This document shows, in pieces, positions 2,335 to 21,137 of a stretch of 64,000 bases of DNA. A program made the translations under genes and the position numbers. The DNA lies in NCBI GenBank assembly GCA_048772705.1, contig JBLWGC010000126.1:1-64000 (forward strand), given 5' to 3'. The stretch is from Leidyana gryllorum EB-2025a. Taxonomy: Eukaryota; Protista; Apicomplexa. The notes beneath the pieces were generated by a model. The model saw nothing but the letters and a program-made list of their open reading frames with translations, made no database searches and was not told the origin of the DNA. Each line of letters opens with the position of its first letter. The stretch's first letter is position 1.

Positions 2335-2698
2335 GTAGAGAGAGAGTATTTCCACATAGACATAGACGATGCTTAGACGCATGTTTTAGTCGTAATTACC
2401 ACCACCACCACCACTGTGGGTGGAAGAAGAGGAGTTGAGTATTTGTCGCAGGTTAGCAGAGGTCTCGCTGAACTGCAGGGGGCATTGGGTACTTCCTTTG
2501 GACTTACGTACTACGTCATTAAAGTACGTTTCGAGGAACTCCGTGACGGTCAAGTCTCTGTAGGGTTCCAAGAAGGCCAGCACCTCCCGGAGAGGGAGCC
2601 TTTCATCGCGCTCGACATCTCCAGACATTTCAAAGGCCGAAATATATTTGGGATCTACTAGTCGCCGGAGACGTCCGGCTGTTCCTTCTCTAGGAAGA

Positions 2699-5021
2699 AT
2701 GTCCGCCTCATACACTTACACTGCGGCCAGCGCCCCGCGCCTCCCAGCTACAACAACTCAGAGCTACCCTTCTCCTCCGAGTTATGCGCCGTCAGTTCAG
2801 TATCGCACCGCCTACCCTTCTCCTCCGGGAGCTGTTGCTCCTCAAATTGTCTCCTACACCCGCCCCTCTACCACCAGTCCGCCGCCGTTCTCCGCTCCTC
2901 AAGCCGCCCCGTTCGGGCAGACGCAAGCTTCTTACCCCCCTACGACGACCCAAACTACCACTTATGGAGCCACGAAAATGAATATGTTGCCGCCCCAGAC
3001 GTCGCTTTCCTCTCTTCCGCCTCAGGCGCCCCGGTTTTTGGGCCCCACGCCCGGGATGACAATGGAACCGATGCACATTCAACAACCTCCGGTGCAGACG
3101 GCGCCGTCGCAGCCGCCTTCCGCTGTGTACACCACCCACCAAATGCCCCCGCAGGCGCCGCAGCAGCAGCAGCAACGCATCGCTCAGCCCCAAGCGCCGT
3201 CTGCGGCGGGAGCGCCCCCGAATATGAGTCTGCTGCAGCAGCATCTGCGTCCAGTGGCGCCCCCGAGCGCAACTCAAATGGGTCTGCCAAACCTCGAGTA
3301 CATTGTGGCGCCAAGCTCGGCCCGAGACCGCCCCATGAAGGCTACCCCTGTCCTGCCCCAGCAGTCGCAAGGGTACCCACCCTACACCCGAACCACGCCT
3401 GCCGCTGTTCCCCAAGCTCCTGCCTATCACACCGTTATGGCCATGCAACCCCAGCACGACGATACTGCTGCGTTTAAGCCTATCGCCGTCGGCGACAGAC
3501 TGCCTCCGGCTCACATTGATTTACACGGAGTCTGTGTTAATCTGCAAGAGTTCTTCAAGAATCGCAATGGGATCATCTTTGGCCTCGTTGGCGCCTTTAA
3601 TCCGGTCGATACCGATAAGGCTGTGCCAGCGATACTTAAAGCTCAGGAACATTTCGAACGTTTGGTCGATTTTGTTGGCTGTTTGGTGGTCAATGACCCC
3701 TTCGTCGTCAAGGGTAAGTTTTCTTCCCAAGTGGCCATGGCCACTCTCAACTTCTCTCCGTTCAGCTTGGGCAAAGAAGCTGGGTGTCGTCGATCAATTT
3801 ACATTCATTGCTGATTCCGATGCAAAGTTTACGAAGGTACTTGGTATGGCTCAATACTTGCCAGCCGAAGGACTGGGAATCCGGTCTCGTCGCTTCGCCG
3901 CTGTGGTGGGACCACGCGCGAAGATTCGCTGGATCGGCTTCGATGACGATTCCTTAGCGGACAATGTTCTCCTCCACTTGCCGCGGTTCGTGCGTACTCC
4001 TTGGAAGTCTTTCCTCGTTGGAGTCGGCTACAACGCCTCGGACGAAGACGAGGACGCGCGAGTTCGCGAAGACACTGTCAATAATCTGCAGTCAGTGCGA
4101 TCGCTTCTCGCCAGCCAAGTGAGTCGTTCAAACCTTCTCCCACTCTCAATCTCCTTTCCACCGCCAGGGGTTCTGTTCCGAACCGGATTGGCAGCTCCTC
4201 CTTTGCGACAAGATGATGGATGTATTCACCCCGACGCGCGATAACATTCTCAATGGTACGGCTCCGCCTCTCCGACCGCAAAACTCTCTCACTGCAGGTC
4301 TCCGATGGGTGGTGGAAGGTGCCCAAGCTGGAGATGTTCTCTGCTTCTACTTTGCAGGAAAGGGTGGAAGGTTTGTCAATGAAGATGGCACCGAGACCTC
4401 GGGATTGCTGCCCATGGATCACGAAGTGGCTGGTCCAATAGACGAATGGGAGATTTATGAGACTTTGGCACCTGTAAGCTTCGAACAGTTACCCCCCTTC
4501 CTAACCAACCCCCGCCGCTGCAGCATGTTCCGGAGAGTTGTCGACTGACTATCATTTTGGACATCCATAACGAAGAGCCCGTGCACTGTCCCATGCCGTA
4601 CGTGTACAGCTCCAAGGTATCGGTAGTGTCCTCTGGAGACATGGAGGCCCAGATTCTATCGAGCGAAAGTATCCAATGGCGGGAGCGCTATGGCGGTGAC
4701 CCCAAGTTGCGGGGCGAGATTATCGTTGTTTCACTGCACGGACACAGCCCCGTACCTCCCGGATGCTTGTCGAGTCTTCTCACCAGTGTTTGCGTACCTG
4801 AGGAGCGTCGGGATGAGTTTGATCAGCCCCTCACTTACGCCGATCAAATGGACCGGATGCAAGTGCAACTCGTCGAATGGCAAGCTGAGGTGAGAGAACG
4901 AACCCCCATCTATTTTCTGTGTTTCATACCATTGCACTATCCGCAGAAAACTGTGCAGCTCGCAACCTCCCGCCCCCTCAACCTGAACGAGGAATTCACT
5001 CTAGCAGATGTCCTCCCCTGA
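2699..5021 (+). CDS. Pro/Gln-rich N-terminus + Prx5-like peroxiredoxin domain + type I metacaspase-like domain; both domains appear catalytically dead
   Basis: Introns 3714-3765, 4119-4167, ~4256-4297, ~4474-4523 and ~4890-4946 join the ORFs in frame. Prx5 motifs: IAVGDRLP, GAFNP, VNDPFVVKAW, IADSDAKFTK, LGIRSRRFA. Metacaspase motifs: LVGVGY, PTRDNIL, RWVVEGAQAGDVLCFYFAG, LTIILD, MPYVY, VQLATSRPLNLNEEF. Confidence 0.8.
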
Positions 5022-5173
5022 ATTAGCGGTGCTTTTTCTGTCTGTGCCCGAAATCCCATATCTGCTTGCTTATTGACCTCATGTCTCGCCAGTGCAAACC
5101 ATAAAGGAGGACCACCGTATCTTGTGATACTTATCCCCTGTCGCCCTGTACAAACACTGTGCTCGCGCCACAC

Positions 5174-5203
5174 GTGTGTGTGTGTGTGTGTTTGTGTGTG
5201 TGT
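5174..5203. repeat. (GT)n microsatellite
   Basis: gtgtgtgtgtgtgtgtgtttgtgtgtgtgt in the intergenic region upstream of the helicase array. Confidence 0.9.
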
Positions 5204-5296
5204 ATAAGTGCGGGTGAGTGAGTCTGTTTCCAGTCCGCCACGTCATTTGCGGCTCTTTTTCGCTCGAAAACCGTTCATTGCTGCGGTTGTTTGACC

Positions 5297-7666
5297 ATGC
5301 ATCGGTTGAACAACTCACAGTCCCGAGTGGCGGATGTTGCGTCCGTGTCTAATCGTCTCACAATGGCTGTGGGAGGGCCCGGGACGGGCAAGACGACGGC
5401 TATCATAGGACGTCTGTGGAACAGGATCAATCTTGCCAGTGAGGGTTTGAGGAGGACTCTGTTGGTGGTCCCGACGCATCAGAGGCGACAGCGTATATGG
5501 CAGAGCTTGAAGGAGGACTATAACGCATTATGTGGCGATGTTGACTGCGTGTGGGCTGGCACCTTCTATACTGTTTCAAGACGTTTATTGCTGGAGTACG
5601 GCGAATCGCTTCTACCGGCAGACTCGACAATGCTGGATCTGCGTGGGCAACGGACGCTGATAAGCCGCCTGTTGTATGAGGGCGCCCAAAACGACTGTCC
5701 TATGAACGGCTACCCCTATCATCAGCACACCGACAGAGTTCTGAAGTATATCCAGGAGCAGAAACGTTGTGGGTATGACGCGGACGAAGTGCCTATGGCG
5801 TCGCGAAAGGCATTCGAAAGCAGCATATTTGACGAGTACGCGAGCGCGTGTGACCAGCAGGATCTGTATGACGCAGATGATGTCATTCTACGGTGTTTGT
5901 CCTTACTTCGACGGACTAAGAGCAATCGCAAGTTGAAACAGACATTACAGTCTAAATTCACGGATATTATCGTTGACGACTTCCAGAACACGACTCCGGT
6001 GCAACGGCAATGGTTGGCTGAAATGATCAAGATTTGTCCCGCCTCCGTGTGCATAGTGGGAGACGAAGACCAGTGTCTGTACGAGTGGCGGCAGGCGAAC
6101 TTGGGGACCTTAGAAGAGTGGAAACGGACGCATTCCTTCAATTATGTGAGACTGGAACGAAACTATCGATCGACCAAGAATATATGTAGAGCTGCCCGAA
6201 ACCTGATTAGTCACGCGGAAGATTGGTCTCGCAGAGGGATGTTCAGCAACAACGACAATGGCTCAGAAGTGCTGCTGTTCACCGCTGACAGTAACATCGA
6301 GATGTTCCGAGAGGTCGCTCTGAACGTTGCTCAGGATGCGGTCCGCTGGTCTGATACGGCGGTGATCTTCCCCAACCGCCGTTATCTGTCGGGACTTCGA
6401 GCGGCTCTCGACAACGAAGGCATACCATATCACGTGGTCGGCAACGTGAAACTCGTCTGCCAACCCGCAATCCGACACTTATTCGCCTTCTTGAAAATCA
6501 CAATCAATGAGAAGGACGATGTCTCTCTTGATAGGATACTATCACAGAAATGTCCCTATGTGTGGGCTGACGAACGGGACGACATCGTCGCATCACAAAC
6601 GATTGACAATTGTCAAGGTCAACTCCTTTGCACTCTCTTGGAACAACTGGATGAAGACCAATTGAGCCACAGTCTAGCACACATCGCCTCTTGGCTTGGA
6701 GCTATCATTGAGGAAATCAAAGAACTGATGAACTCTTGCAGTGGGATAGCCAATCTCATTGAGGAAGTTTTGCAAATACCATCGGTACGCACTCAATGCG
6801 TAGAGGCCGGAAGACGCGCTGGAGTCCCAAACGAGCGCAGTCAATCGGATCTCACCAAATTCGTTGAGTACCTTCGACAATTCGAAGCATCTCACGTTCC
6901 CCCCCAGCGACGAGTCACTCCTCTGCAAGATTTCTTTGCCTCTGTCAGTGACTTCTCGTGGCTCGTCGAGGATTCTGTCCAAGAATCCCGCGACGCTGTG
7001 CAACTCATGACGCCCTATGCTGTCCAGGGCCACGAGTTTGAGTCAATTCATGTACTCGGAGTCGCCGAGGGCTTCTATGATGATGCAGATGAAGAGTCTC
7101 TTTCGCCATACCTCAGAGAACTCTTCGTTGCTGTCAGCCGCGCCAGGAGGCATCTACGCTTATATGCCAGCCACACAGACGCGTGGGGCGCACCCCTCGA
7201 TCTCGACTTGTTCCAAAGCTACATACTCCAACAGCGGGGAGGCAGCAGAAAGCGCAAAGCATCCGATCAGCCCAACTTACTCGCCGTCTACTCGTGCCAC
7301 CCCGTACGTACTTCCACGGTCAACAGCGATGGCGGGGGCGGCCACACTCGCCAGTGGGGCGAGGCAGAGTCTGATGCCGATCTCTCACCCGACGAATATT
7401 ATGACGACGAAGACGACGAAGACGACGAAGAGGACTATGATGATGACGAAGACGACGAAGAGGACTATGATGATGACGACGACGACAACTACGGTGACGA
7501 CGACAACTACGGTGACGACGACAACTACGGTGTCACATTCAATGCAGCGGTTGGGGACTTCTTTGGTGACGGATTCGTCTGTCATGAGGACGGAACCTTC
7601 ACCATGACTTACTCCTGTGACGATCCGGATTACTACGCCGATGCGGATTACTACCACGGCGATTGA
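5297..7666 (+). CDS. Divergent UvrD/PcrA-family SF1A helicase (copy A) with altered Walker B and acidic C-terminal tail
   Basis: Q-motif LNNSQ, Walker A GGPGTGKT, WAGTF, Walker B IVDDFQN, motif III VGDEDQCLYEWRQA, IV LERNYRST, V LMTPYAVQGHEF, VI LFVAVSRA. Intronless; first ATG at 5297. Confidence 0.88.
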   Translation: MHRLNNSQSRVADVASVSNRLTMAVGGPGTGKTTAIIGRLWNRINLASEGLRRTLLVVPTHQRRQRIWQSLKEDYNALCGDVDCVWAGTFYTVSRRLLLEYGESLLPADSTMLDLRGQRTLISRLLYEGAQNDCPMNGYPYHQHTDRVLKYIQEQKRCGYDADEVPMASRKAFESSIFDEYASACDQQDLYDADDVILRCLSLLRRTKSNRKLKQTLQSKFTDIIVDDFQNTTPVQRQWLAEMIKICPASVCIVGDEDQCLYEWRQANLGTLEEWKRTHSFNYVRLERNYRSTKNICRAARNLISHAEDWSRRGMFSNNDNGSEVLLFTADSNIEMFREVALNVAQDAVRWSDTAVIFPNRRYLSGLRAALDNEGIPYHVVGNVKLVCQPAIRHLFAFLKITINEKDDVSLDRILSQKCPYVWADERDDIVASQTIDNCQGQLLCTLLEQLDEDQLSHSLAHIASWLGAIIEEIKELMNSCSGIANLIEEVLQIPSVRTQCVEAGRRAGVPNERSQSDLTKFVEYLRQFEASHVPPQRRVTPLQDFFASVSDFSWLVEDSVQESRDAVQLMTPYAVQGHEFESIHVLGVAEGFYDDADEESLSPYLRELFVAVSRARRHLRLYASHTDAWGAPLDLDLFQSYILQQRGGSRKRKASDQPNLLAVYSCHPVRTSTVNSDGGGGHTRQWGEAESDADLSPDEYYDDEDDEDDEEDYDDDEDDEEDYDDDDDDNYGDDDNYGDDDNYGVTFNAAVGDFFGDGFVCHEDGTFTMTYSCDDPDYYADADYYHGD
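7399..7531 (+). repeat. Coding tandem repeats (~30-bp x2 and 18-bp x3) forming an Asp/Glu/Tyr tail
   Basis: gacgaagacgacgaagaggactatgatgat x2; gacgacgacaactacggt x3 (DDDNYG). Confidence 0.9.
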
Positions 7667-8049
7667 AGCAGACGACCGGGGAGCTGCAAATTGGTCTGGT
7701 GTGTCAGCAGAGGAGCGGCAAAAAAGTGACAGTCGCTCATCCGGGGGAAGCCGGTGACGACAGAAGGCAGAAGAAGCTTTGCCGTCCCTATGATCCGACG
7801 AATCTGATCGTGGATGCATCACGTAGCGGCCACACGTGTGGTCAAGTTAGTCGATCACACACTGTGTTTGTGGATTGCCCTCTTCTTCTGACCTCCAACT
7901 TTGCTGATTGGCTTTTTCCCGTCATTCCTGGGTGTGTCACCGACCTGCAATGGTTCTCTGAGCAGTTTGAAGATTGACTTTTTTTGGCTGCCCCCGCCCA
8001 CCCCCGGCCGTCGTCAGTATCATATATATCTATATCTATATATATAGAG

Positions 8050-10308
8050 ATGACTGCTGTTCCTCCCACGCGTTATATGATCGTGGGGGGTCGGAAGAAT
8101 GAGAGAATGACCTGTATGGCTCGGTATATCAATGAGCGCCTTGGTTCTCAGTCTGCACAGCCAAACTCAATTGTGGTGCTGAACAGTAACGTTGCCGATA
8201 AGGACTTCCTCCGAGCCAAGTTAGACGAGCTGAATGGCGGCCAAGTAGAATTGGCCTATGCGGGGACATTTGAAGAAGTCTTATTCAATGTGTTCAGGTC
8301 ACAGAAGACTGGAGGCCGAAGGACTTTCAGTCTCATCACCCCAAAGCTCAAGGAAGCGATGATAAGAAAGATTGTTTTGGGCTCCTGTAGACGCGAAGGC
8401 AGGCTGTTCCGCGCTCGAGACGCAGAAGAGTGTCTACGGTACATCTCGAACGAGCAATTGAAACGGCGATGGCCGGGACATCCGAAAGCGGAACCGTCCA
8501 AAGAAAGAAGATGGGGGGCCGCGTACAAACAATATGAGCACAATAAACTCAATGAATGGGATGTGGAAGAATTGGTGGTCAAGACGATCGAAGGATCGAA
8601 ACGTACACACAAAGCGACCGCCCCCGTTTTCACCGATGTTCTGGTTGACGAGATATATTTGACCTCTCTGGCGGCGTCTGAGTTCCTTCGGTATTACATT
8701 GGCCCCCAAACGCACGTCGTGTTCACTGGTGATCCCGGAGACCGGTCCCGAAAAGCGCTCTGTCCGGCCACCGTCAGAGACTGGGCGAAGGAGTTTGATT
8801 TGTCTCTGATCAATCTGGACGAACCGCTGTCCGCCCCTCTCAACCACGGATTTTGGCCTCCTGTATGGCTCAAAAGCCCGAGTGATCATCCAATGGGGAC
8901 AAGTTCAAACCTCACTACGAGCACTGTTGCGACAAACGGAACAACAATAAGCGGCCGTCGAACATCGATTGCTGTGAGTGTGGGTGGGCCTCACTTCAAC
9001 AATTCGCGACGCGTCGCCCCCGAACAGCCGATCCGTGAGGTTGTCAGTGTGAATACTATCGATTCTCCCACACTTTTGGGTACTCACCACGCGCACCACG
9101 TGTCTCCCCCACTTTTGAGTACTCACCACGCGCACCACGTGTCTCCCCCACTTTTGGGTACGCACCACGTGTCTCCCGGGCAGCCAATTCGAGAGGTTGT
9201 GAGTGTTGAGACAACGGCTCCGCCCACTATCTTCTTTACGGTTGCGATAGACATTGAGGATGAGAGCGCGGCTGTGGCCCAGGTGATCTGCACACTGAAG
9301 GAGACGCGGGCTCTGAACGAGTTGGGTATAATGTACCCGGACGACTGGCATCTGGAGCACATCCAGATGGCGTTACTGAAGTACCGAATACCCTACAGAG
9401 TGTTGGGAGAGCCTTATATATGGGACTCGCCGTTGGTGGAAACGTTGACGAGTTATATCCAGGTGGCCTTGGACCACCCGGTTTTCTCGACACCAGCGGA
9501 GTCGGCGTCTTATTGTCGGGCGAAGCGACACTGGTCGAGTGTGAATGACTCGTCGTTGCCAATGGGCGGTTCTGCGGTGTTGCAGACGAGCGGGCGATCT
9601 TTCGAAGAAGTAATTAGTCTAATGTCGAGTATTTGTCGAGATCGGTCATTACCGTTGGCCAATGTTATCCGTCTGTTACTCCGTATCTCCAAGTTGCACC
9701 GAGAAGAGAACGAACTGAGCGCTACAGATGCAGCGATTCTGGGTGCCCTCAACCGACGGGTTGAATGTTTCCAGCACGGGTGTTTGCCCGATGACGGGCG
9801 AGTGGCTATAGAACAATGGTTGGAAGTTGTTGAAGGTCATCAGCTGTTGTTGGCCCCCCCGAGGACTCAATGTTCCTCGTCCAAGGCGGTGCAGTTGATA
9901 AGTGTTGAGAAGCGGTCGACCAATCTTGTTTTTCAGTCACTGTGTGTAGTAGGATTCAATGACTCGAGATCAGAGCTTTCAGAGTCCGATCGCGGAACCA
10001 TCGACGGACTCGTTGCAATGGCCCAATGTGACTTACGCCTTTTCAGCACAATAGGATTTGGGCCGTCTTGGCGATTTCTCAAACTCCCCTGTGAGGCGGT
10101 CGAGTACACCGGGACACTCAAGACCCATCACAGAGACTTCCCGCCCGACAACACCACCGCCACCAAACATCCCTCCTCCCAACGAGAGGACAGAAATGAG
10201 TCCCCTGTTGCGACTACGAGACCCCCCAAACGTGAATCTGCGCATTCCCCAGTACACCCTCCCTCCCCCAAACATATCAAAACTGAGAATAGCCCAACCA
10301 AACAATGA
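8050..10308 (+). CDS. Degenerate UvrD-fold pseudo-helicase (copy B)
   Basis: Residual motifs YAGTF, FTDVLVDE, VVFTGD, GIMYP, IPYRVLG, VQLIS..VVG are colinear with copy G. P-loop replaced by GGRKNER; motif IV missing. Intronless. Confidence 0.8.
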   Translation: MTAVPPTRYMIVGGRKNERMTCMARYINERLGSQSAQPNSIVVLNSNVADKDFLRAKLDELNGGQVELAYAGTFEEVLFNVFRSQKTGGRRTFSLITPKLKEAMIRKIVLGSCRREGRLFRARDAEECLRYISNEQLKRRWPGHPKAEPSKERRWGAAYKQYEHNKLNEWDVEELVVKTIEGSKRTHKATAPVFTDVLVDEIYLTSLAASEFLRYYIGPQTHVVFTGDPGDRSRKALCPATVRDWAKEFDLSLINLDEPLSAPLNHGFWPPVWLKSPSDHPMGTSSNLTTSTVATNGTTISGRRTSIAVSVGGPHFNNSRRVAPEQPIREVVSVNTIDSPTLLGTHHAHHVSPPLLSTHHAHHVSPPLLGTHHVSPGQPIREVVSVETTAPPTIFFTVAIDIEDESAAVAQVICTLKETRALNELGIMYPDDWHLEHIQMALLKYRIPYRVLGEPYIWDSPLVETLTSYIQVALDHPVFSTPAESASYCRAKRHWSSVNDSSLPMGGSAVLQTSGRSFEEVISLMSSICRDRSLPLANVIRLLLRISKLHREENELSATDAAILGALNRRVECFQHGCLPDDGRVAIEQWLEVVEGHQLLLAPPRTQCSSSKAVQLISVEKRSTNLVFQSLCVVGFNDSRSELSESDRGTIDGLVAMAQCDLRLFSTIGFGPSWRFLKLPCEAVEYTGTLKTHHRDFPPDNTTATKHPSSQREDRNESPVATTRPPKRESAHSPVHPPSPKHIKTENSPTKQ
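9071..9177 (+). repeat. 39-bp coding tandem repeat (LLGTHHAHHVSPP x~2.7)
   Basis: cacttttgggtactcaccacgcgcaccacgtgtctcccc repeated; flanked by a duplicated QPIREVVSV peptide. Confidence 0.9.
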
Positions 10309-10423
10309 GAATATATTGACAATCATTGAACAAAAGAGAGCGATTTGAGTCGATTGAGCCGTAGAGAGGGGATCGAGTCGACAATTGAGGCCAATATAGC
10401 ACCACTTTTTTTTTGGCGCCAAG

Positions 10424-11581
10424 ATGACCATTGCAGTTCGTGTTGGAGAGAGAGAGTCTTCTTCCTTTCATCAGCAAAAGGGGGGGCGTTTCCATCATGT
10501 CAGTGCCGTTTTGGGATCACTGTGCATTGGGGATGCACCAAAAGAAATCTCATCATCTCCAGCAGCAGAGTCAAGTTTGGGAAGTGGCAACAAAGTCTCA
10601 TCATTGACTCTGGGCAAGGCGGCATTTCTTCTTGATAACGCCACCGCTATCGACATAGCGGACGAGGAACTGCCCTCTTTTCGAAAGCGAAAGGATCTCT
10701 TGGATATTGAGATCCTCAACCATCAAACCCTGGATTGGCAATCGTGGCCCGACAAACCACTCACCGCCGACCAGATTCGAAACATCATTAGTGACCACAA
10801 AACGGCTGTGTATCTCGTCTACGAGGATCGTGTTCTCGAACTCGCAGACCTCCATATTCCCCGTGCGAATTGGAAAGCTTTCCAGACACTCGACGACGAG
10901 GGGGAGGCCGCCTCCTCATCCTCTCCAGAGGGCTTAGTCGAATGCGAAACCTCCCTCTTCCTCTCTCTCTACACCGATCGCGAGCCTACCCAGCCGCATC
11001 GGCGAAATCCGGAGACCGACGATGTCCCGTTGTACAGCACCAAGCCCATCAACCACTTGTACACGATAGCAGAGGCCGAGGAGGCCCCCCCGTTGTACAG
11101 CAGCACTGAGCCCATCGAGAACTCCGAGGACAGAGCAGCGGAGCTCGAACACATTCTCGGCTTCAAGGCTTCCACTCCCGCAGACGATGTCCCATTGTAC
11201 AGCAGCACTGAGCCCATCGTCATCCTCGAGGAGACAGCAGAGCTCGCCGAAGCACTCGCTCACACCGTGGGTCTCGCGCAAGAAAAGTCAGCAAACGCCA
11301 TTCAATCGCACTTTGACGATGTTCCAGCGGATAGTGAGCTCAAAAAGGTGGTGGCGGTGACTGTTGCCAATGGTCGAAGACGTGAGCTCCCTGGCGACAT
11401 TGTGCCCGGCTGGTGGCTCTCTATGCTCGGAACACGCAGTCTGAATCTCGAATTCCACTTCCTCAGAGACGGGGAACCTATTGTCAGAACCATCTCTTCT
11501 TCAAAGTACTTCTCGTGGGAGAAAAAGCGCCGATGTCCCTCCCGAGGATCTCTCGAGGCTGTCCGGGAACTTTCTGTGTGA
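10424..11581 (+). CDS. Orphan intronless protein embedded in the helicase array, with three PLYS(S)T[EK]PI repeats
   Basis: 385-aa ORF with ATG context gccaagATG, internal repeats at ~11020, 11085 and 11185, and no UvrD motifs seen. Confidence 0.7.
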   Translation: MTIAVRVGERESSSFHQQKGGRFHHVSAVLGSLCIGDAPKEISSSPAAESSLGSGNKVSSLTLGKAAFLLDNATAIDIADEELPSFRKRKDLLDIEILNHQTLDWQSWPDKPLTADQIRNIISDHKTAVYLVYEDRVLELADLHIPRANWKAFQTLDDEGEAASSSSPEGLVECETSLFLSLYTDREPTQPHRRNPETDDVPLYSTKPINHLYTIAEAEEAPPLYSSTEPIENSEDRAAELEHILGFKASTPADDVPLYSSTEPIVILEETAELAEALAHTVGLAQEKSANAIQSHFDDVPADSELKKVVAVTVANGRRRELPGDIVPGWWLSMLGTRSLNLEFHFLRDGEPIVRTISSSKYFSWEKKRRCPSRGSLEAVRELSV

Positions 11582-11853
11582 AGAAGGGCAAAAAGACGAA
11601 TAGATTGGAGAGTCTCTGAATCTGTCCCCAAGAGATTGCGAAACAGGGGTCTTTAATTTGGGGCGAATTTGGAGTCTGCTTTAGACTTTGCACTTTAGAA
11701 CTTGCGATATGTCACGCTTAACAGTTGTGTATCATTTGTCACATACTCATTCACACAAACTCTTTGCAATCTTACTGCGATCCTATACCGACTGGGGGGA
11801 AGGCCAAATGTGCGTTTGAACGATGTTTTTTTGGTCTACTAACACTAGCCAAG

Positions 11854-13860
11854 ATGACCACACCCCCACAAAGGTATATGATTGTGGGAGGGTCGGACGA
11901 GCATCGAACACGACTGCTGGCGCACTATATTTATGACACTGTTGTATCCGGACGGTCTGCCCCACAAAAGATGCTAATACTGAGTAATTGCGAGGTGGCC
12001 AAAACAGCCTTGAGGAAACATTTCAGGGCTGTACGGGGACGCCACCCCGGTCTCTTCTTTTCAGGACATTCGGGAACCTTCGAAGATGTGGCAGAACGAA
12101 TGTACAAATCCTGGACCGGTTGCCGAGAACTCCGCATAATGACCCCCAAAGAACGCGATGTGAAAATCACAGAACTACTCCTCAAACTCGCAATGGAAGA
12201 AGGCCGCTCCATAGTAGACCATGAAGCAGAAGAGTGTGTCCAATACATCAAACGCGAGCAACGAGAGGGACGACGCCCCGGACATCCTCAAGCGAGGAAA
12301 CCTCACTACCCAACATGGCAAGCTGTCTATCACCAATATGTTGCTGAGAAGGGCACACAAATGGAAAAGGAGGAAGTCATATGGGAGACCTTAAGACAAC
12401 TAGACGTCGAGTCCAAACGCCTGGACAAATTCACCTGTTACTTCACGGACATCATTGTTGACCAAGTGCATCTTACTACGCCAACAAACGAACGCTTCCT
12501 CCGTCGATTCGTCGGGCTGCACACACGTGTGGTGCTCACTGGCGAACTCGCCGCGGGAGGCTTCTACCGGGACAGAACGCAAGAAATCAGCGACAGTCTG
12601 CAATGCCGGATCATAAGCACAGATCTGGCCCCACCCCAAAGCTTTTGGTCAATACTTGGTGAAGAACACGAAAGACGAAAATCGCCACAACCGGAGTACG
12701 AAGAATACTGGCCACTGACCCCCAATCGAGAGCAGTCGGAGCCGGCCGTGAAAGTGACACAGCCGACGGTCTCATTGAATATCGCTACAGACTTGAAGGA
12801 TGAGAGTGCAACAGTCGCCCGTCTCATTGAAGGACTGGAAGACAAAAGTGCCTTGTATGCGGAAGGTATCATATATCCTGATGAATGGCATGCCGAACAC
12901 ATTCAGTTAGCACTCCTCCAGTCTCGGATACCCTTCAGTGTTGCTGGAGAACCCGATTTTTGGGACGACACCCACATTCGAACTCTGTTGAGTTACATCT
13001 ATGTGGCTCTGGGGTACATTGCCGCGACAGACGAGAAGACACTAGCTCGGGTCCATTGGGCAACTCGTCGTCACGATGACACACCGATGGCCAACGGCAA
13101 GCCGCGGTCATTCGATCAACTGATCGCTCGCATCGGAGACATATGTCGAGATCGAGCGTTATCGCTGACGAGTGTTATCCGGCTGGTGATGCAGTTGTGC
13201 GGTCTGGTTACCAGTTGTGACTTTGAGACGCTGCAAGCGTTTCAACACCGAGTGCAGTTGTTCCAATATGCGCTAAACGGCAACTATAATGAGGATCAAT
13301 TGGTGATCGAATATTGGCTTCGGTTCGCTGACGATTATTATTCAATGGAATCAAGTGGACCTTCAGACAGCTTGAATCAAGTGCGACTGATGAGCGTTGA
13401 TGATCCGTCAAACGATCAACCAATATTTCGCCATCTATATGTCGTTGGCTTCAATGACTCGAGAGCGGAGCTTTCTGAGACTGACCGACCAGCTGTGGAG
13501 AGCCTCCTCTCGAGAGCCACAGACAAAGTTCTACTCTTCTCTACAATTGGGTTCGGTCCGTTCTGGCGTTTTCTGCAGGTGAAATTCGAAACTCTGGCCA
13601 ATGAGCAAGAAATCATCACCACAAGTCGACCCTCCCCCAGTCCTGAGCCGTACGTGGCGGTGACGAGTCCAGTTCGATATGGCAGCGAAGAGTGCCAAGG
13701 CGGCGCTGAAGCTCTGCCTCAACCACTTCCTCCTTCTGCTAAGGCAAGACGCAAGAGAGCTCGTGGCAGCGGTCCGGCGGGCAACGCTGGTGCAGCGGGC
13801 GGGGGCGCTGGCTCTCGGCCTCCACCAGTGCGTAGCAAAGTTCCCAAAGTTGAGGCTTAA
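11854..13860 (+). CDS. Degenerate UvrD-fold pseudo-helicase (copy D)
   Basis: RYMIVGG N-terminus shared with copy B. HSGTF, FTDIIVDQ, HTRVVLTG, GIIYP, IPFSVAG, VRLMS, VVGFNDSR, FSTIGFGPFWRFL; basic C-terminus KARRKRAR. Confidence 0.8.
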   Translation: MTTPPQRYMIVGGSDEHRTRLLAHYIYDTVVSGRSAPQKMLILSNCEVAKTALRKHFRAVRGRHPGLFFSGHSGTFEDVAERMYKSWTGCRELRIMTPKERDVKITELLLKLAMEEGRSIVDHEAEECVQYIKREQREGRRPGHPQARKPHYPTWQAVYHQYVAEKGTQMEKEEVIWETLRQLDVESKRLDKFTCYFTDIIVDQVHLTTPTNERFLRRFVGLHTRVVLTGELAAGGFYRDRTQEISDSLQCRIISTDLAPPQSFWSILGEEHERRKSPQPEYEEYWPLTPNREQSEPAVKVTQPTVSLNIATDLKDESATVARLIEGLEDKSALYAEGIIYPDEWHAEHIQLALLQSRIPFSVAGEPDFWDDTHIRTLLSYIYVALGYIAATDEKTLARVHWATRRHDDTPMANGKPRSFDQLIARIGDICRDRALSLTSVIRLVMQLCGLVTSCDFETLQAFQHRVQLFQYALNGNYNEDQLVIEYWLRFADDYYSMESSGPSDSLNQVRLMSVDDPSNDQPIFRHLYVVGFNDSRAELSETDRPAVESLLSRATDKVLLFSTIGFGPFWRFLQVKFETLANEQEIITTSRPSPSPEPYVAVTSPVRYGSEECQGGAEALPQPLPPSAKARRKRARGSGPAGNAGAAGGGAGSRPPPVRSKVPKVEA

Positions 13861-14037
13861 TGAAAGCTATTCATCCCCAATGGATGTGATTCCCCAATGA
13901 ATGTCATTGTTGATTCATCCCATAGTTAGAACGTGTAATCCATCATTCATTTGTCACTGGGGCAAAGACGGGATTACACTAGTCTCTACTATGTATGCTA
14001 CTGCCCGTTCTGTGTTTCCGGTTTTTTTTGTTGGCCG

Positions 14038-16389
14038 ATGGGGGCTCACCTGCTCCTGGTGGGACGTACGGATCGAATTAGGACTAACCTGTTGGCACAG
14101 TACATTGATTATCGGGTGAAGGTTGAGAATGCCAAATTGGATAAGATATTGATGTTGTGCAATAACCGGCTCGACTTTGAGCAGTTCAAATGGGAGTACC
14201 TCAAAGTCATTGGAGGCTCGCAAGGCGAAAAGTATCCCAAGTATTGTGGAACCTTCAATGAAGTGGCACTCAGAATGTTCAAAGTGGTCATGAAGGGCAA
14301 AGCTCCAAAGGGCAACAAAGCTAAGAGGAACACTGGCTTCTCCTTGGTCTCGTCGAGAGCGAGAACTTATCGATTGAAGAAAGCCCTTTCAATACACACC
14401 CGACGAGAACCGGACGCCGAAGAGGTCAGAGACTTTGGACACTATGTAAAAAGGCGGAAAATGGCCATTGGTAATCCCAAGTTACACTCTCAGCCAATCC
14501 CTCCCAAGTTCCACCATTGGAAAAGAGCCTATGCGTCCTATGTTCAGATCAACAGGGACAATCTTAGTATCGACCCGGAAGATCTGATGCCCACCATGCT
14601 GGCACGGCTACGCCTCAAGACCAGTCCGAGGATACTGGGCGCCCTGGACTTCACAGATATTATAGTCGACCGGATAAGCTTCACGGACCCCTCCTTCACC
14701 GCCTTCGTGGAACGCTTCGCCGCCAAAGCCACTAATGTCATCTTCACAGGAACAATGGAGAACGGCCTCGCCGTTCAAACGACCGAATGGATGAAAAGGC
14801 TCCATTGCTCTCTCATCAACTGCAAACAGTTGCCTTCCACTCATGTCTGGAAACACATTCTGGTCGACCAGCACCCACGATATGCGTTTGTCCCTCCCAA
14901 CGCCCCTTCAGAGGCAACCCAACGACCTCCAAGTGCCCCCAGCGCTCCCAACGGGGCCAGTACGCCCAGCGTTCCAGACGCACCGAGCGTTATCCGGCCA
15001 CCCGGTGTTGCCAAGGGCCCGAGCGTCACCCCCAAGGCGCCCACCAAGAAGACGCCCACCACTCCCAGATCGACGAAAGGGGCGCTTCCAGCACGGGTGT
15101 CCCCCCCTCGTGTGGCTAAGGTGCCCCCCACCGTGCCTCCTATGGCGCCCCAACAAAAGAAGGCGGGTCCCGCCCCTCCACCTCGGCCACCCTCGTCGAC
15201 AGTGATCTCGGCCCGGCCGTCATCGGCTTTGATTCCTGTCATATCGCCCTCGACGGTGGTCCCGCCACCAACGTCAATCATTTCCCCGCCCGCCTCACCG
15301 AGGATCACGGCCTCGGTGGCAGTCAGCCTCAGTTGCGACCGGAAGGACTTGAGCAACCAAGTCGTTCGTACCCTCATAGAAGGTGAGGGCGGGCAGCGGG
15401 GTGCACTGTCAGAGGTCGGAGTGGTCTATCCAAACCCGGTCTATCTGGAGTACCTCAACAGGGCGTTGTTGAGTGCTCGAATACCTTTCCACGTCGCCGG
15501 AGAACCAAAAGTGTGGGAGTCTTCGTTGATTCTGACACTAACCAGCTATATCAAGATGGCACTCGATCCCGACAATCCCCGTTACAGACGGGGCTCCCGC
15601 AGACGGCAACGGGCTTTTATTCATTGGTATTCAACTAATCTTCCACCGCTCGTGTCTGCTGGTGAAGAAGAAGTACCGGTGCCCTCATTCGATTATGCTC
15701 TGCGAAAGATTGGTGAAGTTTGCAGAGATCCGTCTTTGCCGCTGTCCACTGTCATCGACTTGGTCCTGGACACATCGGGACTTCACCGCCGGGGTGAGAG
15801 ATGGAGTGCTCCGGAACAGCGAATCTACGATGCTTTCATGAACCGCATTAATAGCTTCACCGCAGTGGAGGGGCAGCCGCCGATTGACCAGTGGCTGAAA
15901 CTGAGCAACAGCCACTCGCCAATCGATGGGGTACCAGTTCCACTGCTGCAGGTGATGTGTTTGAGGGACTTGCGTCGAGACACAAAGTTTCCGTACCTCT
16001 ATATACTCGGTCTGAACGATGTTGCCGAGCTGCAAGAGACCCATCCACAAACTGTCAAAATGCTGCTCGCAATGGCAGTCAAACGAGCCCGATTCTTCAC
16101 GAACGTTGGAGTTGGTCCCGCTTGGCGATTTTTGAGAGTCAGACACGAACAGATAGAGTGCAGTGCCCAGTATCGAGCCCAGAAATTCCCGTCCCACCCA
16201 ACGATCCCCGCAGTCAAAGTTGAAAGGCGGGGCCTCAAGCGGCTGCGTGACGCACCCCAGGAGGAGGTAGGAGCAGAGGGCTCTGAGTCCCACACACGAA
16301 TGAGGCTCAATTCCTCAGTGCCCAGTCATACCGTCATTGATATAGACAGCGATTCAACCGATGATTCAGACAACAATCCAACCAATTGA
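14038..16389 (+). CDS. Degenerate UvrD-fold pseudo-helicase (copy E) with Pro-rich insert and C-terminal SIM-like motif
   Basis: YCGTF, FTDIIVDR, NVIFTG, GVVYP, IPFHVAG, LTSYIKMAL, ILGLND, GVGPAWRFL; ends TVIDIDSDSTDDSD. Confidence 0.8.
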   Translation: MGAHLLLVGRTDRIRTNLLAQYIDYRVKVENAKLDKILMLCNNRLDFEQFKWEYLKVIGGSQGEKYPKYCGTFNEVALRMFKVVMKGKAPKGNKAKRNTGFSLVSSRARTYRLKKALSIHTRREPDAEEVRDFGHYVKRRKMAIGNPKLHSQPIPPKFHHWKRAYASYVQINRDNLSIDPEDLMPTMLARLRLKTSPRILGALDFTDIIVDRISFTDPSFTAFVERFAAKATNVIFTGTMENGLAVQTTEWMKRLHCSLINCKQLPSTHVWKHILVDQHPRYAFVPPNAPSEATQRPPSAPSAPNGASTPSVPDAPSVIRPPGVAKGPSVTPKAPTKKTPTTPRSTKGALPARVSPPRVAKVPPTVPPMAPQQKKAGPAPPPRPPSSTVISARPSSALIPVISPSTVVPPPTSIISPPASPRITASVAVSLSCDRKDLSNQVVRTLIEGEGGQRGALSEVGVVYPNPVYLEYLNRALLSARIPFHVAGEPKVWESSLILTLTSYIKMALDPDNPRYRRGSRRRQRAFIHWYSTNLPPLVSAGEEEVPVPSFDYALRKIGEVCRDPSLPLSTVIDLVLDTSGLHRRGERWSAPEQRIYDAFMNRINSFTAVEGQPPIDQWLKLSNSHSPIDGVPVPLLQVMCLRDLRRDTKFPYLYILGLNDVAELQETHPQTVKMLLAMAVKRARFFTNVGVGPAWRFLRVRHEQIECSAQYRAQKFPSHPTIPAVKVERRGLKRLRDAPQEEVGAEGSESHTRMRLNSSVPSHTVIDIDSDSTDDSDNNPTN

Positions 16390-16546
16390 CCTAACTGGAG
16401 GCAGAGCACACACATACAATGTTATGATCTGTCCAGTCTGGCAGTGCACTTTGGAAGGCAGATTGTTCTTCAGAATAGATTGGAGTTTAATCGGAGTCAT
16501 ATACAGCATGTAGGCAGGAGGCAGAATTATTTTTTTGGTGCCGGAC

Positions 16547-18868
16547 ATGGCGACGATTCGGACCCGCCGAATTGCTTTACACTTGGGAGAGGAGGAATGG
16601 CGGACCAATTTGCTGGCCAGCTATATTCACTATAGAGTGGAGGTTGAAGGAGCAGATCCAAAGGCCATAATGGTTCTTTGTCCGGAGGCTGTGGGTGTAG
16701 CAAGGTTATTGACGGCTATGGAGTCGCTCAGGTGGAAGTCTGGTAGTCCTCCAGAGATTGCTTATATTGGAAGTTTCGCGAATGTGGCATTGAAGATGTA
16801 TGAGGATATGACAGAATCTGGACCGTGGAATTTGATGCAAAGTAATGTTAAAATTGAAGTAGTGAATGATATCTTAAAACGAGAATGTATGCTCGAAGGA
16901 CGGGAACCCATCACGATGGAGCTGTCCGCGTGCAATACTTATGTCAAATGGCGACAATTGTCTAACATGTATAAGGAAGACAATCAAAATGTTGCGGACG
17001 GCCCATTCCGGACCTGGAGATCTGTCTTTCGTAAATTCGAAGAGGATAAGCGTCAAACCCAACAACTGGACCCAGAGGACATTATCTGCAAACCGATGTA
17101 CTACATCGATAAGCATCAGGCGCAGGAGGCCAGAACCCGGTTCACCGACCTTGTCATCAATAAAGCTGATGAGATGAGCACACTTCATAAACAATGGATA
17201 AGTCGCTTTATTGGGCCCCAAACACACACGGTGATGGCTGGGCGTGAGATACCGCAGAATGCCCCGAAGAACGCTGCTGGGGCGCCAGTTTTCTGGTCAG
17301 ATGGCAATGAAGATGAGATGGTGCTGGTGAACATTAATCTTGACAGCAAAACAAACCCTGCATTTCCCCAGTTCTGGGAGGTTCAAATGGCCCGATGCGC
17401 AGCTGCACAGACACCGGGTCCCCAGGCCATAGACTCCACCCCCGAGCCGCGCAAGACGCCCGTCTCCATCAGTGCGAGTCGGCCTCCACCCATTGCTAAC
17501 CCGCCCTCCCCGCCCCCCATAAGCTCCAGCAAGCCCGTTTCTCACAACAACAACAATATCAACAGTCTTTCTGAGCTGCTGGCATCGCTAGGCTATCCCA
17601 CGCTCGCATCCGTCCCGTCCCCCTTTAAGTATGCGAATGTGCCACCAGCAGCACTACCCATTGAGTCACGGCGAGGACCTTTGAATGTCCCCCAACGACC
17701 GTCGGACATGTTCTATATACCCCCAGATCCCAACAGATTGACCCAATATCGCGACCATCACTTCTTGGGTGCCGCCTCAGAGGTGACATTTCATGTGACG
17801 TGTCATGTGACCGACTTGGTCTCGGATGTCGTGCGCCACATACAACAAGTCGACGGCGCCTCGCCAGTTGCTTTGGGTATCGTTTGTCCATCGCCTTTGT
17901 ACCTCGAAACACTCCGGCCAGCACTCTTCGCCAGCAGAGTACCATTCAATGTTACCGGAGAGAAGGTGTGGGGTTCACAAATTCTGGGGATCTTCCAAAA
18001 CCACCTCAAGGTCGCGCTGCATCACCCAAATGTTTCTGCGGTCGACGAAGAGATATACGCTGTTACCAAAGCTCATTGGTGGATGCAGCACGGCTTGAAG
18101 GTCATCAAGCACGAGCCTGAAAATAAATCATCTTCTTCAAAGATTCCGTCGGCGCGCCCTCTTGCGTACCCCAGTTATGACCACCTGATGACAACCATTC
18201 AGGAGATCTGTCGGCATAGCTGCACAATCGGACAAGGAGGTTGGCCTCTTTCTCGGGCGTTGTGTACAATCCTTGATATGCTCGATTTCCCTCGGTCGGA
18301 GAACTTCACGCCGCAAGATCACCGCGACTTGCGCGCTCTGAGAGCTCTGGCCCAAAGTGCGGACCAAATACTCACGCCAGGGTCGCAGGAAGGACTCGCA
18401 CCGCTGCTCAAGTGGATCGAATTAGTGGATTTTCATCGCAACCTCGTCGCCGCTCCGGATGCCAGCAAGATGAAGATAAAATATGTCACTCTTATGGAGC
18501 TCGAGGATGTTCCGCTCAACCAGGATTTTGGGGTCCTCTATGTCGCCGGATACAACGACTCCAGAGCCAGTCTGTCAGACAGTGACCCCCACACATTCGA
18601 TGAGCTTCGGCTGAGAACCAAATACACAATCCGACTCTTCACCATATTCGGGTTTGGACCGTCTTGGCGCCTCAAAAGAGGCATCCACTGCGGGCCAGTC
18701 ACCTATACTCCGATGTACCGAGCCCTTCGCGACCCCTCCACTGCCAACAGAATGGCAGCTCTCGTTCCATGGGTTCCAGAGCCACTGCCGCACACACCAT
18801 TGGGAGCCTCCAAACGACCATTCGGACCACCTCACGGTGTCCCTAGCAGCAAAATGCCGAGGCGATAG
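16547..18868 (+). CDS. Degenerate UvrD-fold pseudo-helicase (copy F)
   Basis: RTNLLASYIHYRV shared with copy E. DPKAIMVL, YIGSF, FTDLVI, GIVCP, VPFNVTG, VTLME, VAGYNDSR, GFGPSWRL. Confidence 0.78.
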   Translation: MATIRTRRIALHLGEEEWRTNLLASYIHYRVEVEGADPKAIMVLCPEAVGVARLLTAMESLRWKSGSPPEIAYIGSFANVALKMYEDMTESGPWNLMQSNVKIEVVNDILKRECMLEGREPITMELSACNTYVKWRQLSNMYKEDNQNVADGPFRTWRSVFRKFEEDKRQTQQLDPEDIICKPMYYIDKHQAQEARTRFTDLVINKADEMSTLHKQWISRFIGPQTHTVMAGREIPQNAPKNAAGAPVFWSDGNEDEMVLVNINLDSKTNPAFPQFWEVQMARCAAAQTPGPQAIDSTPEPRKTPVSISASRPPPIANPPSPPPISSSKPVSHNNNNINSLSELLASLGYPTLASVPSPFKYANVPPAALPIESRRGPLNVPQRPSDMFYIPPDPNRLTQYRDHHFLGAASEVTFHVTCHVTDLVSDVVRHIQQVDGASPVALGIVCPSPLYLETLRPALFASRVPFNVTGEKVWGSQILGIFQNHLKVALHHPNVSAVDEEIYAVTKAHWWMQHGLKVIKHEPENKSSSSKIPSARPLAYPSYDHLMTTIQEICRHSCTIGQGGWPLSRALCTILDMLDFPRSENFTPQDHRDLRALRALAQSADQILTPGSQEGLAPLLKWIELVDFHRNLVAAPDASKMKIKYVTLMELEDVPLNQDFGVLYVAGYNDSRASLSDSDPHTFDELRLRTKYTIRLFTIFGFGPSWRLKRGIHCGPVTYTPMYRALRDPSTANRMAALVPWVPEPLPHTPLGASKRPFGPPHGVPSSKMPRR

Positions 18869-19095
18869 GCCACCGAGAATATAGATCAGCCTCAGCATAT
18901 TGACAACTTTCATACGACATCTATCATGATCAATGCGCCCTCTCACAACACACAAATATAGTCAGCCTCAAGCTGTCCGCCGCGAATCCATTGAGCTGGC
19001 AGCCAGATGCCTCAGAATACACTCTTTGCCCTCGCCACAGCATTCAGTGCAATTCGCAGCTCTGTGAAAATCGATCCATTGCTGCTTTTTTTGTC

Positions 19096-21108
19096 ATGGA
19101 CGCGCTCAATGAGGAGCAACGAGAGGCTGTTTCGGACACAAAGACACGCTTCATGATGGTGCTGGCTGGGGCGGGTACCGGGAAGACTCGTACTCTTACC
19201 ACGCGTGTCTGGCGGCAAGTCAAGGTGGATGGAAACGATCCAGCTAGAATGATGTTAGTCACCTTCACTCGGAAGGCAGCCGACGAGATGAGAGAACGAA
19301 TGAAGATCATGGATAAGACACCAATTGAAGAACGGACCCTTCTTGATCAATTATGGGCGGGCACTTTCCATAGTATGGCGATGAGAATGCTGCGAATGAA
19401 AGGACGCAAGACCAAACACCTACCCGCTACCTACTCCATTTTGGACTCCACAGATCAGAAGTGTTTGGTCAAAGCCCTTTTGGAGGAATACGAGGAATCT
19501 CGATCGCCCTCCAGCGTATCCAGTCTTTCTACACGCGCTAGCTTTGACCCTTCTCAACTGCTTCCAAAAGCAGAGGCTTGCTTGGAATATATTCGTGAGG
19601 AAAAGAATCACGGGAGATGGCCTGGTGAATACGAAGCGGGAAAGAAGAGCTCCTTCTTCGAAGTTATATACAGACGTTATCACGGCCGATGCCGGGCTCA
19701 ATGGTTGCTGGACTTTGATGATATAATTATGCTTTGTGTTAAGATGCTCAAGGAGGTACCCGAAGTCCGCGCGCACTTTCAGAAACTGTTCACTGACATT
19801 TTGGTAGATGAGTTCCAGGACATCAGCATTGTACAGCAGGAGTGGCTGGAGTTGTTGATCGGGAAGCACACACGTGTGTTTGTGGTTGGGGACGATGATC
19901 AGTGCATCTACGGGTGGCGGCAAGCGAACGTTCACACAATGATGCGATGGAAAAACAAGTTTAACTGCAGGCTGATCAAGTTGGAGCGCAATTACCGGTC
20001 GACGGGGAATATATTAAATGCAGCTAACGGTTTAATCAGCAAGAATCAGCAGAGACTGGGCAAAACTCTTTTCACAACAGCGGGGGCTGGACCGGCGGTG
20101 GGGATCTGCTCAGCCAATAGCAAAAGAGATGAAGGTCAACAAGTCGCTCGGAAAATCAAAATATGGAAGGATGCAAAGCGAGCTTTGCGAGATGTGGCAA
20201 TTCTCTACCGAACAGCTGCCCAATCGGACGAGGTCACAGCAGCTCTGGCTCAGCACCAATTGCCTTACCACGTGGTGGGACAGATGGATTTATGGCTTCG
20301 CAAGTCTGTGCGAGACGTACTGGCCTACTTGAAGGTCGCGATCAATGATCGAGACGAGCTTTCATTGGAGCGTATCTTGAACAAGCCACCACGAGGTATT
20401 GGTTCCACGAGTGTGACTTTGCTCAAAGAAGTCTGTGAAGAGAGAAAGCTCACATTAATGGAAGCTCTCAAGTATGTGAGTAACTCACACGGTATTCCGG
20501 GTTTGCCGAGTGTGGGGCTGGCTGGAGTCCAGAGCTTCTTGGCGGTAATGGCAGAGATATCAGACTTATGCCACGACTCTTCCGTTCCGGTGGAGTCCGT
20601 GGTGGAATCGACCATGCGGATAAGCGGTCTCCTGGACCTCTATGAGGAGGAGAAAATGAAAGGGTTGCTGGGGGGTATGGAGTCGTACGAAAGGCTACTG
20701 GAGTATTCTCGGCTTCCTTTGGGTGAAGTGGATCCCTCTCTGCCTGAAGATGGCCGGTCGCCGATACAGAAGTTCTTGAATAGTATCGGAGTGTCATCGC
20801 CAGATGAGAGCGCCAAGACTGACGCGGTCCAACTGATGACTATTCACAAAGCGAAAGGCCTTGAGTTCCGGGCAGTCTTCGTAATTGGTGTGGAGGATGG
20901 AATGTTTCCGCATAAGCGATCTGATGATTACGAAGAAGAGAGGCGTTTGCTGTATGTTGCCATAACTCGGGCCAAACAACATTTGAATCTCTTTTGGTCA
21001 GCCATAGACGTTTGGTTACGTAGCACCTCTCCTTCTCCTTTTCTGAGTGACATTTCCTGCTCAGTGTCAGCAACACCTCCTCCAGCCAAGAAGCCTCGCT
21101 TGCACTGA
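19096..21108 (+). CDS. uvrD: Intact ATP-dependent DNA helicase, UvrD/PcrA family (copy G)
   Basis: All SF1A motifs canonical: LNEEQREAV, AGAGTGKT, VTFTRKAADEM, GTFHS, VDEFQD, VGDDDQCIYGWR, LERNYRST, AILYRT, NKPPRGIG, LMTIHKAKGLEF, EERRLLYVAITRA. C-terminal PAKKPRLH is NLS-like. Confidence 0.95.
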   Translation: MDALNEEQREAVSDTKTRFMMVLAGAGTGKTRTLTTRVWRQVKVDGNDPARMMLVTFTRKAADEMRERMKIMDKTPIEERTLLDQLWAGTFHSMAMRMLRMKGRKTKHLPATYSILDSTDQKCLVKALLEEYEESRSPSSVSSLSTRASFDPSQLLPKAEACLEYIREEKNHGRWPGEYEAGKKSSFFEVIYRRYHGRCRAQWLLDFDDIIMLCVKMLKEVPEVRAHFQKLFTDILVDEFQDISIVQQEWLELLIGKHTRVFVVGDDDQCIYGWRQANVHTMMRWKNKFNCRLIKLERNYRSTGNILNAANGLISKNQQRLGKTLFTTAGAGPAVGICSANSKRDEGQQVARKIKIWKDAKRALRDVAILYRTAAQSDEVTAALAQHQLPYHVVGQMDLWLRKSVRDVLAYLKVAINDRDELSLERILNKPPRGIGSTSVTLLKEVCEERKLTLMEALKYVSNSHGIPGLPSVGLAGVQSFLAVMAEISDLCHDSSVPVESVVESTMRISGLLDLYEEEKMKGLLGGMESYERLLEYSRLPLGEVDPSLPEDGRSPIQKFLNSIGVSSPDESAKTDAVQLMTIHKAKGLEFRAVFVIGVEDGMFPHKRSDDYEEERRLLYVAITRAKQHLNLFWSAIDVWLRSTSPSPFLSDISCSVSATPPPAKKPRLH

Positions 21109-21137
21109 TTCATGCTTTTTTTGTAACTGTCCTCCCA

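Follow-up and report, generated by a model that had tools for sequence, protein, structure and literature searches.

A tandem array of one intact, one partly degenerate and four apparently motor-dead UvrD helicase genes in the gregarine Leidyana gryllorum

Eukaryotes usually carry one or a few genes of the UvrD helicase family, and Srs2 of yeast and plants is an active enzyme with a long tail that binds Rad51, PCNA and SUMO. Helicase folds without motor activity can act as scaffolds, as in Utp25, Deinococcus PriA and a subunit of the worm CPUG complex; these are single genes and not a tandem family, and they are not known to be UvrD-derived, Utp25 and PriA belonging to superfamily 2. Vertebrate PARI (PARPBP) combines a UvrD-like fold of little or no ATPase activity with short linear motifs in its tail (PMC4838361), and in RecC and AddB an inactivated superfamily 1A (SF1A) fold serves as a non-motor subunit (PMC3064778). 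The dead UvrD folds that we found described (PARI, RecC and AddB) are single genes, whereas the locus reported here holds a four-member family. It lies in a stretch of 64,000 nucleotides (nt; the window) at the start of contig JBLWGC010000126.1 (C126) of Leidyana gryllorum EB-2025a, whose 15.5-Mb assembly of 237 contigs was searched. Six intron-free genes with the UvrD fold (copies A, B, D, E, F and G) and one orphan open reading frame (ORF C) are arranged head to tail on the + strand. Four of them, B, D, E and F, appear from their sequences to constitute a real, selected and apparently undescribed family of UvrD pseudo-helicases.

All six UvrD frames are open and encode 668–789 amino acids (aa), and the spacers across the array measure 115–383 nt. 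The initial annotation had described six co-directional, UvrD-homologous frames of about 670–790 aa, and ORF and homology checks bear this out. The pseudo-helicases are B (8050–10308, 752 aa), D (11854–13860, 668 aa), E (14038–16389, 783 aa) and F (16547–18868, 773 aa), F being the most divergent. Their residues were mapped to UvrD numbering through a Dickeya UvrD of equal length and read against the generally known roles of UvrD residues. In each of the four, the Q motif is gone, the P-loop glycines are replaced and the Walker A lysine (K35) is an arginine. The Walker B aspartate is retained in B, D and E, and the Asp-Glu pair in B only. Motifs III, IV, V and VI are lost, including the motif III glutamine and tryptophan, the motif IV arginine, the motif V glutamate and the motif VI arginine finger. 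The GIG/R421 segment is missing from subdomain 2B, whose N-terminal half is shortened, and the separation-pin hairpin is reduced to a short Gly-rich turn. Thus, the earlier description of these copies as missing the P-loop lysine (GGRKNER, GGSDEHR, GRTDRIR and GEEEWR) and motif IV is correct as to the strings and the motif, with the refinements that the lysine has become arginine throughout and that the losses extend to motifs III, V and VI, the 2B GIG loop and the separation pin. Of 190 alignment columns that do not vary across 14 bacterial UvrDs, 132 are preserved in G, 80 in A, 48 in B, 47 in D, 40 in E and 25 in F. On these motifs, B, D, E and F almost certainly have no helicase activity.

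The place of motif IV is taken in the dead copies by a low-complexity, disordered insert of 38–150 aa. It is shortest in D (~38 aa), measures 126 aa in B, where a 13-aa triple repeat lies at 9064–9180 (+), and is Pro-rich in both E (150 aa) and F (127 aa). The four copies also have a signature of their own, in which G.ND replaces motif Va and F...G.GP.WR replaces the separation-pin hairpin (B, 9940–10073; D, 13435–13568; E, ~16090–16127 for the second half; F, 18536–18669; all +). The signature was found in none of 48 database matches. Conservation peaks at D residues 331–370, the 2A/2B hinge, and 521–580, the signature, with an identity of ~0.5 among the four copies versus ~0.2 to G. The C-termini contain basic clusters resembling a nuclear localization signal (NLS); the tails of B, D and F are basic (Arg/Lys-rich in D), and the C-terminus of E has a VIDI sequence resembling a SUMO-interacting motif (SIM) together with an acidic/Ser run, the only SIM-like motif among the copies. 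A canonical PCNA-interacting peptide (PIP) box occurs in no copy, and a crude test detected no hydrophobic N-terminus or signal peptide in the copies. With basic C-terminal clusters and no signal peptide, the nuclear location originally proposed seems plausible.

Retention of the fold was assessed by homology and by modeling. B, D, E and F match one another with E-values of 1e-36 to 1e-98 and match G with E-values of 1e-5 to 1e-26. AlphaFold models of D and E, built from alignments of the four dead copies alone and free of UvrD sequences, have predicted local distance difference test values of 61 and 52, with confident cores and a disordered insert and tail. The first Foldseek match of both models is E. 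coli UvrD (E 2e-18 for D and 2.5e-11 for E). VIA-align superimposes the D model on UvrD with a Z of 14 and a large root mean square deviation (rmsd), since the lobes are undocked; the 2A lobe of D alone gives a Z of 12.9 and an rmsd of 2.9 Å over 135 residues. Atlas places D among UvrD clusters at 0.95–0.97. These results indicate that the SF1A fold, with two RecA lobes and the 1B and 2B insertions, is kept in D and E according to the models and in B and F according to sequence homology, in line with the fold first assigned to the dead copies.

Selection on the four dead copies was examined at silent and replacement sites. Fourfold-degenerate sites are saturated (20–38% identical among B, D, E and F), and second codon positions are 51–65% identical (0.57 versus 0.41 in shuffled controls). 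A codon model over 508 core codons gave a ratio of nonsynonymous to synonymous rates (omega) of 0.097, a value that is imprecise under saturation although its direction is firm, and omega = 1 was rejected (twice the log-likelihood difference ~309). In neutral simulations of each gene, 0 of 400 frames stayed open at 0.1 substitutions per site. Saturated silent sites, an omega of ~0.1 and the loss of simulated frames together argue for selection on the proteins after catalysis was lost. The initial annotation had likewise favored selection over decay, from frames open for more than 2 kb despite heavy divergence, and both the observation and the argument hold. B, D, E and F are very likely maintained genes. 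Judged by their sequences, they encode proteins that cannot be motors yet are preserved.

No relatives of the dead clade were found in 5.8 billion proteins, 1.84 billion representatives, Joint Genome Institute metagenomes or elsewhere in the genome. All 48 profile matches of the dead copies are ordinary UvrD/PcrA proteins, the named ones bacterial. Transcriptomes of Gregarina sp. Poly1 and Blabericola are present in the searched collection, and none of the tested proteins of this genome was found in the 15-billion collection. The beta-tubulin of the genome is 96% identical to that of Gregarina sp. Poly1 and 95% to that of Blabericola migrator; the remaining single-copy tubulins listed have at most 85% identity, three Logan sequences excepted. 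In the literature, whose coverage is incomplete, we found no paper joining UvrD and gregarines and none on an expanded dead-UvrD family. The finding rests on one genome, from an organism that lacks genetic tools. The empty protein, representative and metagenome searches agree with the lineage-specific family that had been suggested, and B, D, E and F would be either lineage-restricted or too diverged to be seen.

Copy G (19096–21108, +, 670 aa) is an intact UvrD/PcrA-like SF1A helicase. The motif table confirms that it has every motif, as first stated (Q, I, Ia, Ib, II, III, IV, IVa, V, Va and VI), within a 1A-1B-2A-2B layout with the 2B GIG loop that is colinear with E. coli UvrD residues 1–635. 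Matches to the Pfam UvrD domains PF00580 and PF13361 (E 1e-69 and 1e-67) are far over the cut-off, and the best PDB match is E. coli UvrD (E 2e-116). In a protein search of the best 8000 candidates within a length window, the top matches were gammaproteobacterial UvrDs at 36–38% identity and no eukaryotic UvrD was returned. Close relatives of G were absent from viral contigs. A motif III pattern common to G and A is carried by only three distant prokaryotic UvrDs among those searched. The fold of all six copies is that of E. coli UvrD, PcrA and Rep, and G shares all motifs, the four subdomains and the GIG loop with these enzymes. G differs from them in lacking the C-terminal Tudor-like domain, in its 22-aa C-terminal tail with an NLS-like PPAKKPR, and in scoring below the NCBIfam equivalog cut-offs (493 versus 1144 for TIGR01075, less than half, and 479 versus 911 for TIGR01073); A, B, D, E and F differ in lacking some catalytic or DNA-binding residues.

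Among eukaryotic proteins, G resembles Srs2, a UvrD-family helicase with an anti-recombinase role, but the tail of G has just 22 aa, in which no PIP or SIM was found. The UvrD of Plasmodium falciparum, a 3'–5' helicase that binds MLH, is an apicomplexan enzyme nearer to E. coli UvrD than to Srs2 and is the natural candidate ortholog of G; in contrast, its size is roughly double that of E. coli UvrD, and it is described as a single enzyme, with no dead paralogs mentioned (PMC5298969). No other complete UvrD was found in the Leidyana genome, in which genes for Rad51 and another Rad51-family protein, for a MutL homolog and for PCNA are also present. From its sequence, G is most likely a 3'–5' DNA repair helicase.

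Copy A (5297–7666, +, 789 aa) is 31% identical to G and is partly degenerate. It has an intact Q motif, Walker A, motifs III and IV and arginine finger, and retains Q14, K35, D220, Q251, W256, R284, E566 and R605 (UvrD numbering). Its substitutions are E221D, F62P, R355P and H560Y, the first of which gives the Walker B sequence DDFQN that had been noted beside a preserved P-loop. The DNA contacts of motifs Ia, IVa and V are altered and the 2B GIG loop is replaced, and the 2B subdomain has its full length. The 149-aa C-terminal tail is 34% Asp/Glu. A may have been tuned independently of the other copies; it probably binds ATP but hydrolyzes it poorly and grips DNA weakly, and its acidic tail might act as a DNA mimic or chaperone.

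The relationships of the copies were examined in a tree of the six copies and 22 bacterial UvrDs, with no eukaryotic UvrD included. The six copies are monophyletic (99/100), and B, D, E and F form a clade (100/100). The support for pairing A with G is 57/47, and the alternative tree placing A with B, D, E and F is not rejected (approximately unbiased test, p=0.42). The signals on A are contradictory, since it has R355P in common with the dead clade and a 25-nt upstream stretch in common with G. The array copies are 14–38% identical to one another, and the branches of the dead copies are 2–10 long versus 0.84 for G, which calls for caution. The initial annotation had read the array as one intact copy and five progressively inactivated ones; with A placed at 57/47 and p=0.42 for the alternative, a graded series is unsupported by the tree. 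The set is, as its sequences indicate, one intact copy, one partly degenerate copy and one clade of four dead copies, with no graded series shown. Because a single clade unites B, D, E and F, the motor appears to have been lost once, ahead of three further duplications.

The most likely history starts from a single UvrD gene, ancestral to G, that underwent tandem duplication within this gregarine lineage. Sequence and tree show that one duplicate lost ATP hydrolysis, stacking of single-stranded DNA (ssDNA), the 2B dimer loop and also the separation pin. It gained a disordered linker that lies between its RecA lobes, and its 2A lobe acquired a new surface that is conserved. Three further duplications of this motor-dead gene produced B, D, E and F. 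The founding UvrD may have come by vertical descent or by horizontal transfer.

A second feature common to the array is a short T-tract ahead of the coding regions. The window contains only 10 runs of at least 7 T, six of which lie just before the starts of B, C, D, E, F and G and a seventh before the next gene. The element consists of T7–9 followed by G and G/T. On the + strand it is found at 7979–7987 for B (64 nt ahead of the start codon), 10406–10416 for C (9 nt), 11826–11834 for D (21 nt), 14022–14031 for E (8 nt), 16530–16538 for F (10 nt) and 19086–19095 for G (3 nt), with further sites in the window at 21116 (+) and 28584 (−). Copy A lacks the T-tract and has a GT repeat instead. Across the genome the element stands ahead of an ATG 300 times, versus 43 for a reversed control, and it often heads long frames. 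Its presence within 21 nt in five of the seven array genes has a p of ~1e-5 if sites are independent and the genome has 4000–6500 genes, a figure that common descent inflates. A splice acceptor is ruled out, since no AG follows. That the T-tract is kept despite saturated silent sites points to a working promoter or 5' element, and the T-tract is a candidate core promoter or 5' untranslated region element for a minority of the genes in this genome. No shared function class was evident among the T-tract genes elsewhere in the genome. Two T-tract contexts recur nearly identically on dozens of small contigs (C3, C5, C10, C13, C18, C20 and more), which points to a high-copy repeat, a unit like ribosomal DNA or a mobile element. 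A palindromic word, CCACACGTG, lies upstream of both A and B (5165–5205 and 7825–7840).

ORF C (10424–11581, +), between B and D, encodes an acidic protein of 385 aa with three short internal repeats. It shows no UvrD kinship and no Pfam, PADLOC or Atlas match, and a second copy was not found in the genome. It has in-frame codon bias as well as a T-tract ahead of its ATG.

The dead copies share a conserved surface, and their disordered linkers and tails are unrelated; with the NLS-like clusters and the single SIM-like motif, this anatomy is consistent with nuclear adaptors that have a partner in common or form a heteromer. We tentatively favor, by analogy, a role of B, D, E and F as nuclear adaptors in DNA repair, recombination or replication control. 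G would stay a repair helicase, probably acting in mismatch repair and anti-recombination like Plasmodium UvrD, and B, D, E and F would most likely be nuclear scaffolds or adaptors. The signature and the conserved 2A/2B hinge would bind a common partner or one another, and each copy would owe its own contacts to its linker and tail, which are unrelated between copies (E has the SIM-like sequence, and the tails of B, D and F are basic), much as the dead UvrD fold of PARI carries a PIP and a SIM.

The comparison with PARI rests on a catalytically weak or dead UvrD-like domain in a eukaryote, a property assigned to B, D, E and F by motifs only. PARI differs in being a single copy, as opposed to four dead copies here, and in needing its PIP and SIM, whereas the array copies have no PIP. 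The origins are also independent, since B, D, E and F group with the G of their own lineage and their database matches are ordinary UvrD/PcrA. Several observations weigh against the adaptor reading. No copy has a canonical PIP, and only E has a SIM-like motif. PARI can do without its UvrD domain (PMC4838361), and here the fold itself is conserved. The predicted template modeling scores of 0.42 (D) and 0.36 (E) mean that the orientation of the lobes is not predicted. Finally, many families of this genome are expanded in tandem, a second superfamily 1 helicase array among them, so the ancestral pathway need not persist.

This second array (C204, 56583–74519) consists of six intron-free IGHMBP2/Upf1-like SF1B helicases, 26–56% identical, of which the copy at 65570–68431 shows a disrupted Walker B along with changes in motifs V and VI. 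This genome habitually builds tandem arrays that include degenerate members, which makes the arrangement of the UvrD array itself less surprising. Elsewhere, a Sen1/Upf1-like frame of 1243 aa (C230, 1083635–1087363) seemingly contains a second degenerate helicase-like stretch near residue 1087. The parallel array fits an alternative that we consider possible but somewhat unlikely, namely that the dead copies no longer take part in DNA repair at all and that their UvrD fold has become a new module for binding nucleic acids or proteins, serving stage-specific gene control or, as sensor or decoy, defense against transposons or viruses. The extreme divergence of the dead copies in the tree would be expected in that case, as would the replacement of nearly all ancestral DNA and ATP contacts by a new conserved surface. 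UvrD folds do act in Gabija defense; however, the GajB matches here reflect general UvrD similarity, and PADLOC and Pfam searches of C and the neighboring genes revealed no adjacent GajA OLD-type nuclease. Nor was any effector or nuclease domain found in or beside the array with Pfam or PADLOC. Selection is purifying overall and not diversifying, and the four dead genes are stable single copies where a defense family might turn over.

Direct binding of the dead copies (or A) to G, as a loader, activator or dominant-negative subunit in the manner of RecC–RecB or AddB–AddA, is doubtful. The copies share a locus and a start element with G, accessory factors can activate UvrD monomers, A retains a full-length 2B subdomain, and RecC and AddB provide a precedent for a dead SF1A fold that is kept (PMC3064778). 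Those proteins, however, have a C-terminal nuclease or nuclease-like domain, a helicase-nuclease partner and an ssDNA channel for Chi, none of which is seen here; no nuclease or nuclease-like domain was found in any copy including G, and the tails are disordered. UvrD dimers form through 2B around R421 (PMC11912403), in the very GIG/R421 segment that B, D, E and F lack, and ATPase-dead Rep or UvrD fails to activate the wild type (10.1101/2024.02.20.581227). Activation of G by ordinary dimerization is thus unlikely, and the initial suggestion of a partnership with the active copy is weakened as far as the usual mode is concerned. Clustering with G is explained by tandem duplication alone.

An extension of the adaptor reading is more speculative still. 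B, D, E and F, perhaps joined by A, C and G, might be co-expressed parts of a heteromeric nuclear complex of dead UvrD folds. Such a complex would be an SF1A counterpart of Rad51-paralog complexes, held together via the newly evolved surface that stands in place of the separation pin; a gut bacterium may have been the source of the founding UvrD.

A reading of the copies as pseudogenes or as duplicates under neutral drift is highly improbable. Weak codon bias, as this would predict, is seen in every copy, but that includes G; the four long frames remain open although their synonymous sites are saturated, neutral evolution is rejected by both simulation and codon model, and the shared derived motifs and start element are kept, which leaves just very recent silencing. 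Bacterial contamination or mis-assembly, for which the lack of introns and the gammaproteobacterial best matches of G could be cited, has a negligible probability given eukaryotic flanking genes, a GC content equal to that of the contig, a host-type start element, the distance of G from the bacterial equivalog cut-offs and copies too different to be collapsed repeats.

The array belongs to the host genome. The GC content of the window is ~52% and does not change across the array. In the flanks, where spliced genes were viewed as single ORFs, the array is followed by a gene that we take from its N-terminus to be UCH37-like and then by HECT, formin and Tudor-SN genes. The UCH37-like deubiquitinase gene starts at 21138, 30 nt past the stop of G, leaving little space for the 3' end of G and its own promoter. 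A 331-aa frame at 24570–25565 (−), upstream of the HECT frame, has a weak match to Pfam FAKV_Clamp (E 0.0085). Just upstream of A, an intron-containing gene (2648–5021) encodes a Redoxin (peroxiredoxin-like) domain and a protein whose N-terminal part is rich in Pro and Gln. The intron-free state of the array is a weak argument for a foreign or retro origin, as introns are also absent from tubulins, from an actin and from the six helicases on C204. Three actin matches of conventional length were seen on C104, C82 and C216, one of which is quite divergent, and C104, C182 and C224 hold at least four alpha/beta-type tubulin matches, including a divergent alpha-tubulin.

In this gregarine, then, a dead UvrD has turned into a four-member family under long purifying selection, beside its active parent and a half-dead sibling. 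The array is a natural experiment in how a motor becomes a scaffold and in which surfaces are kept or invented on the way. It could hint that the UvrD fold has non-catalytic functions and that gregarines possess an unusual pathway for genome maintenance or defense.

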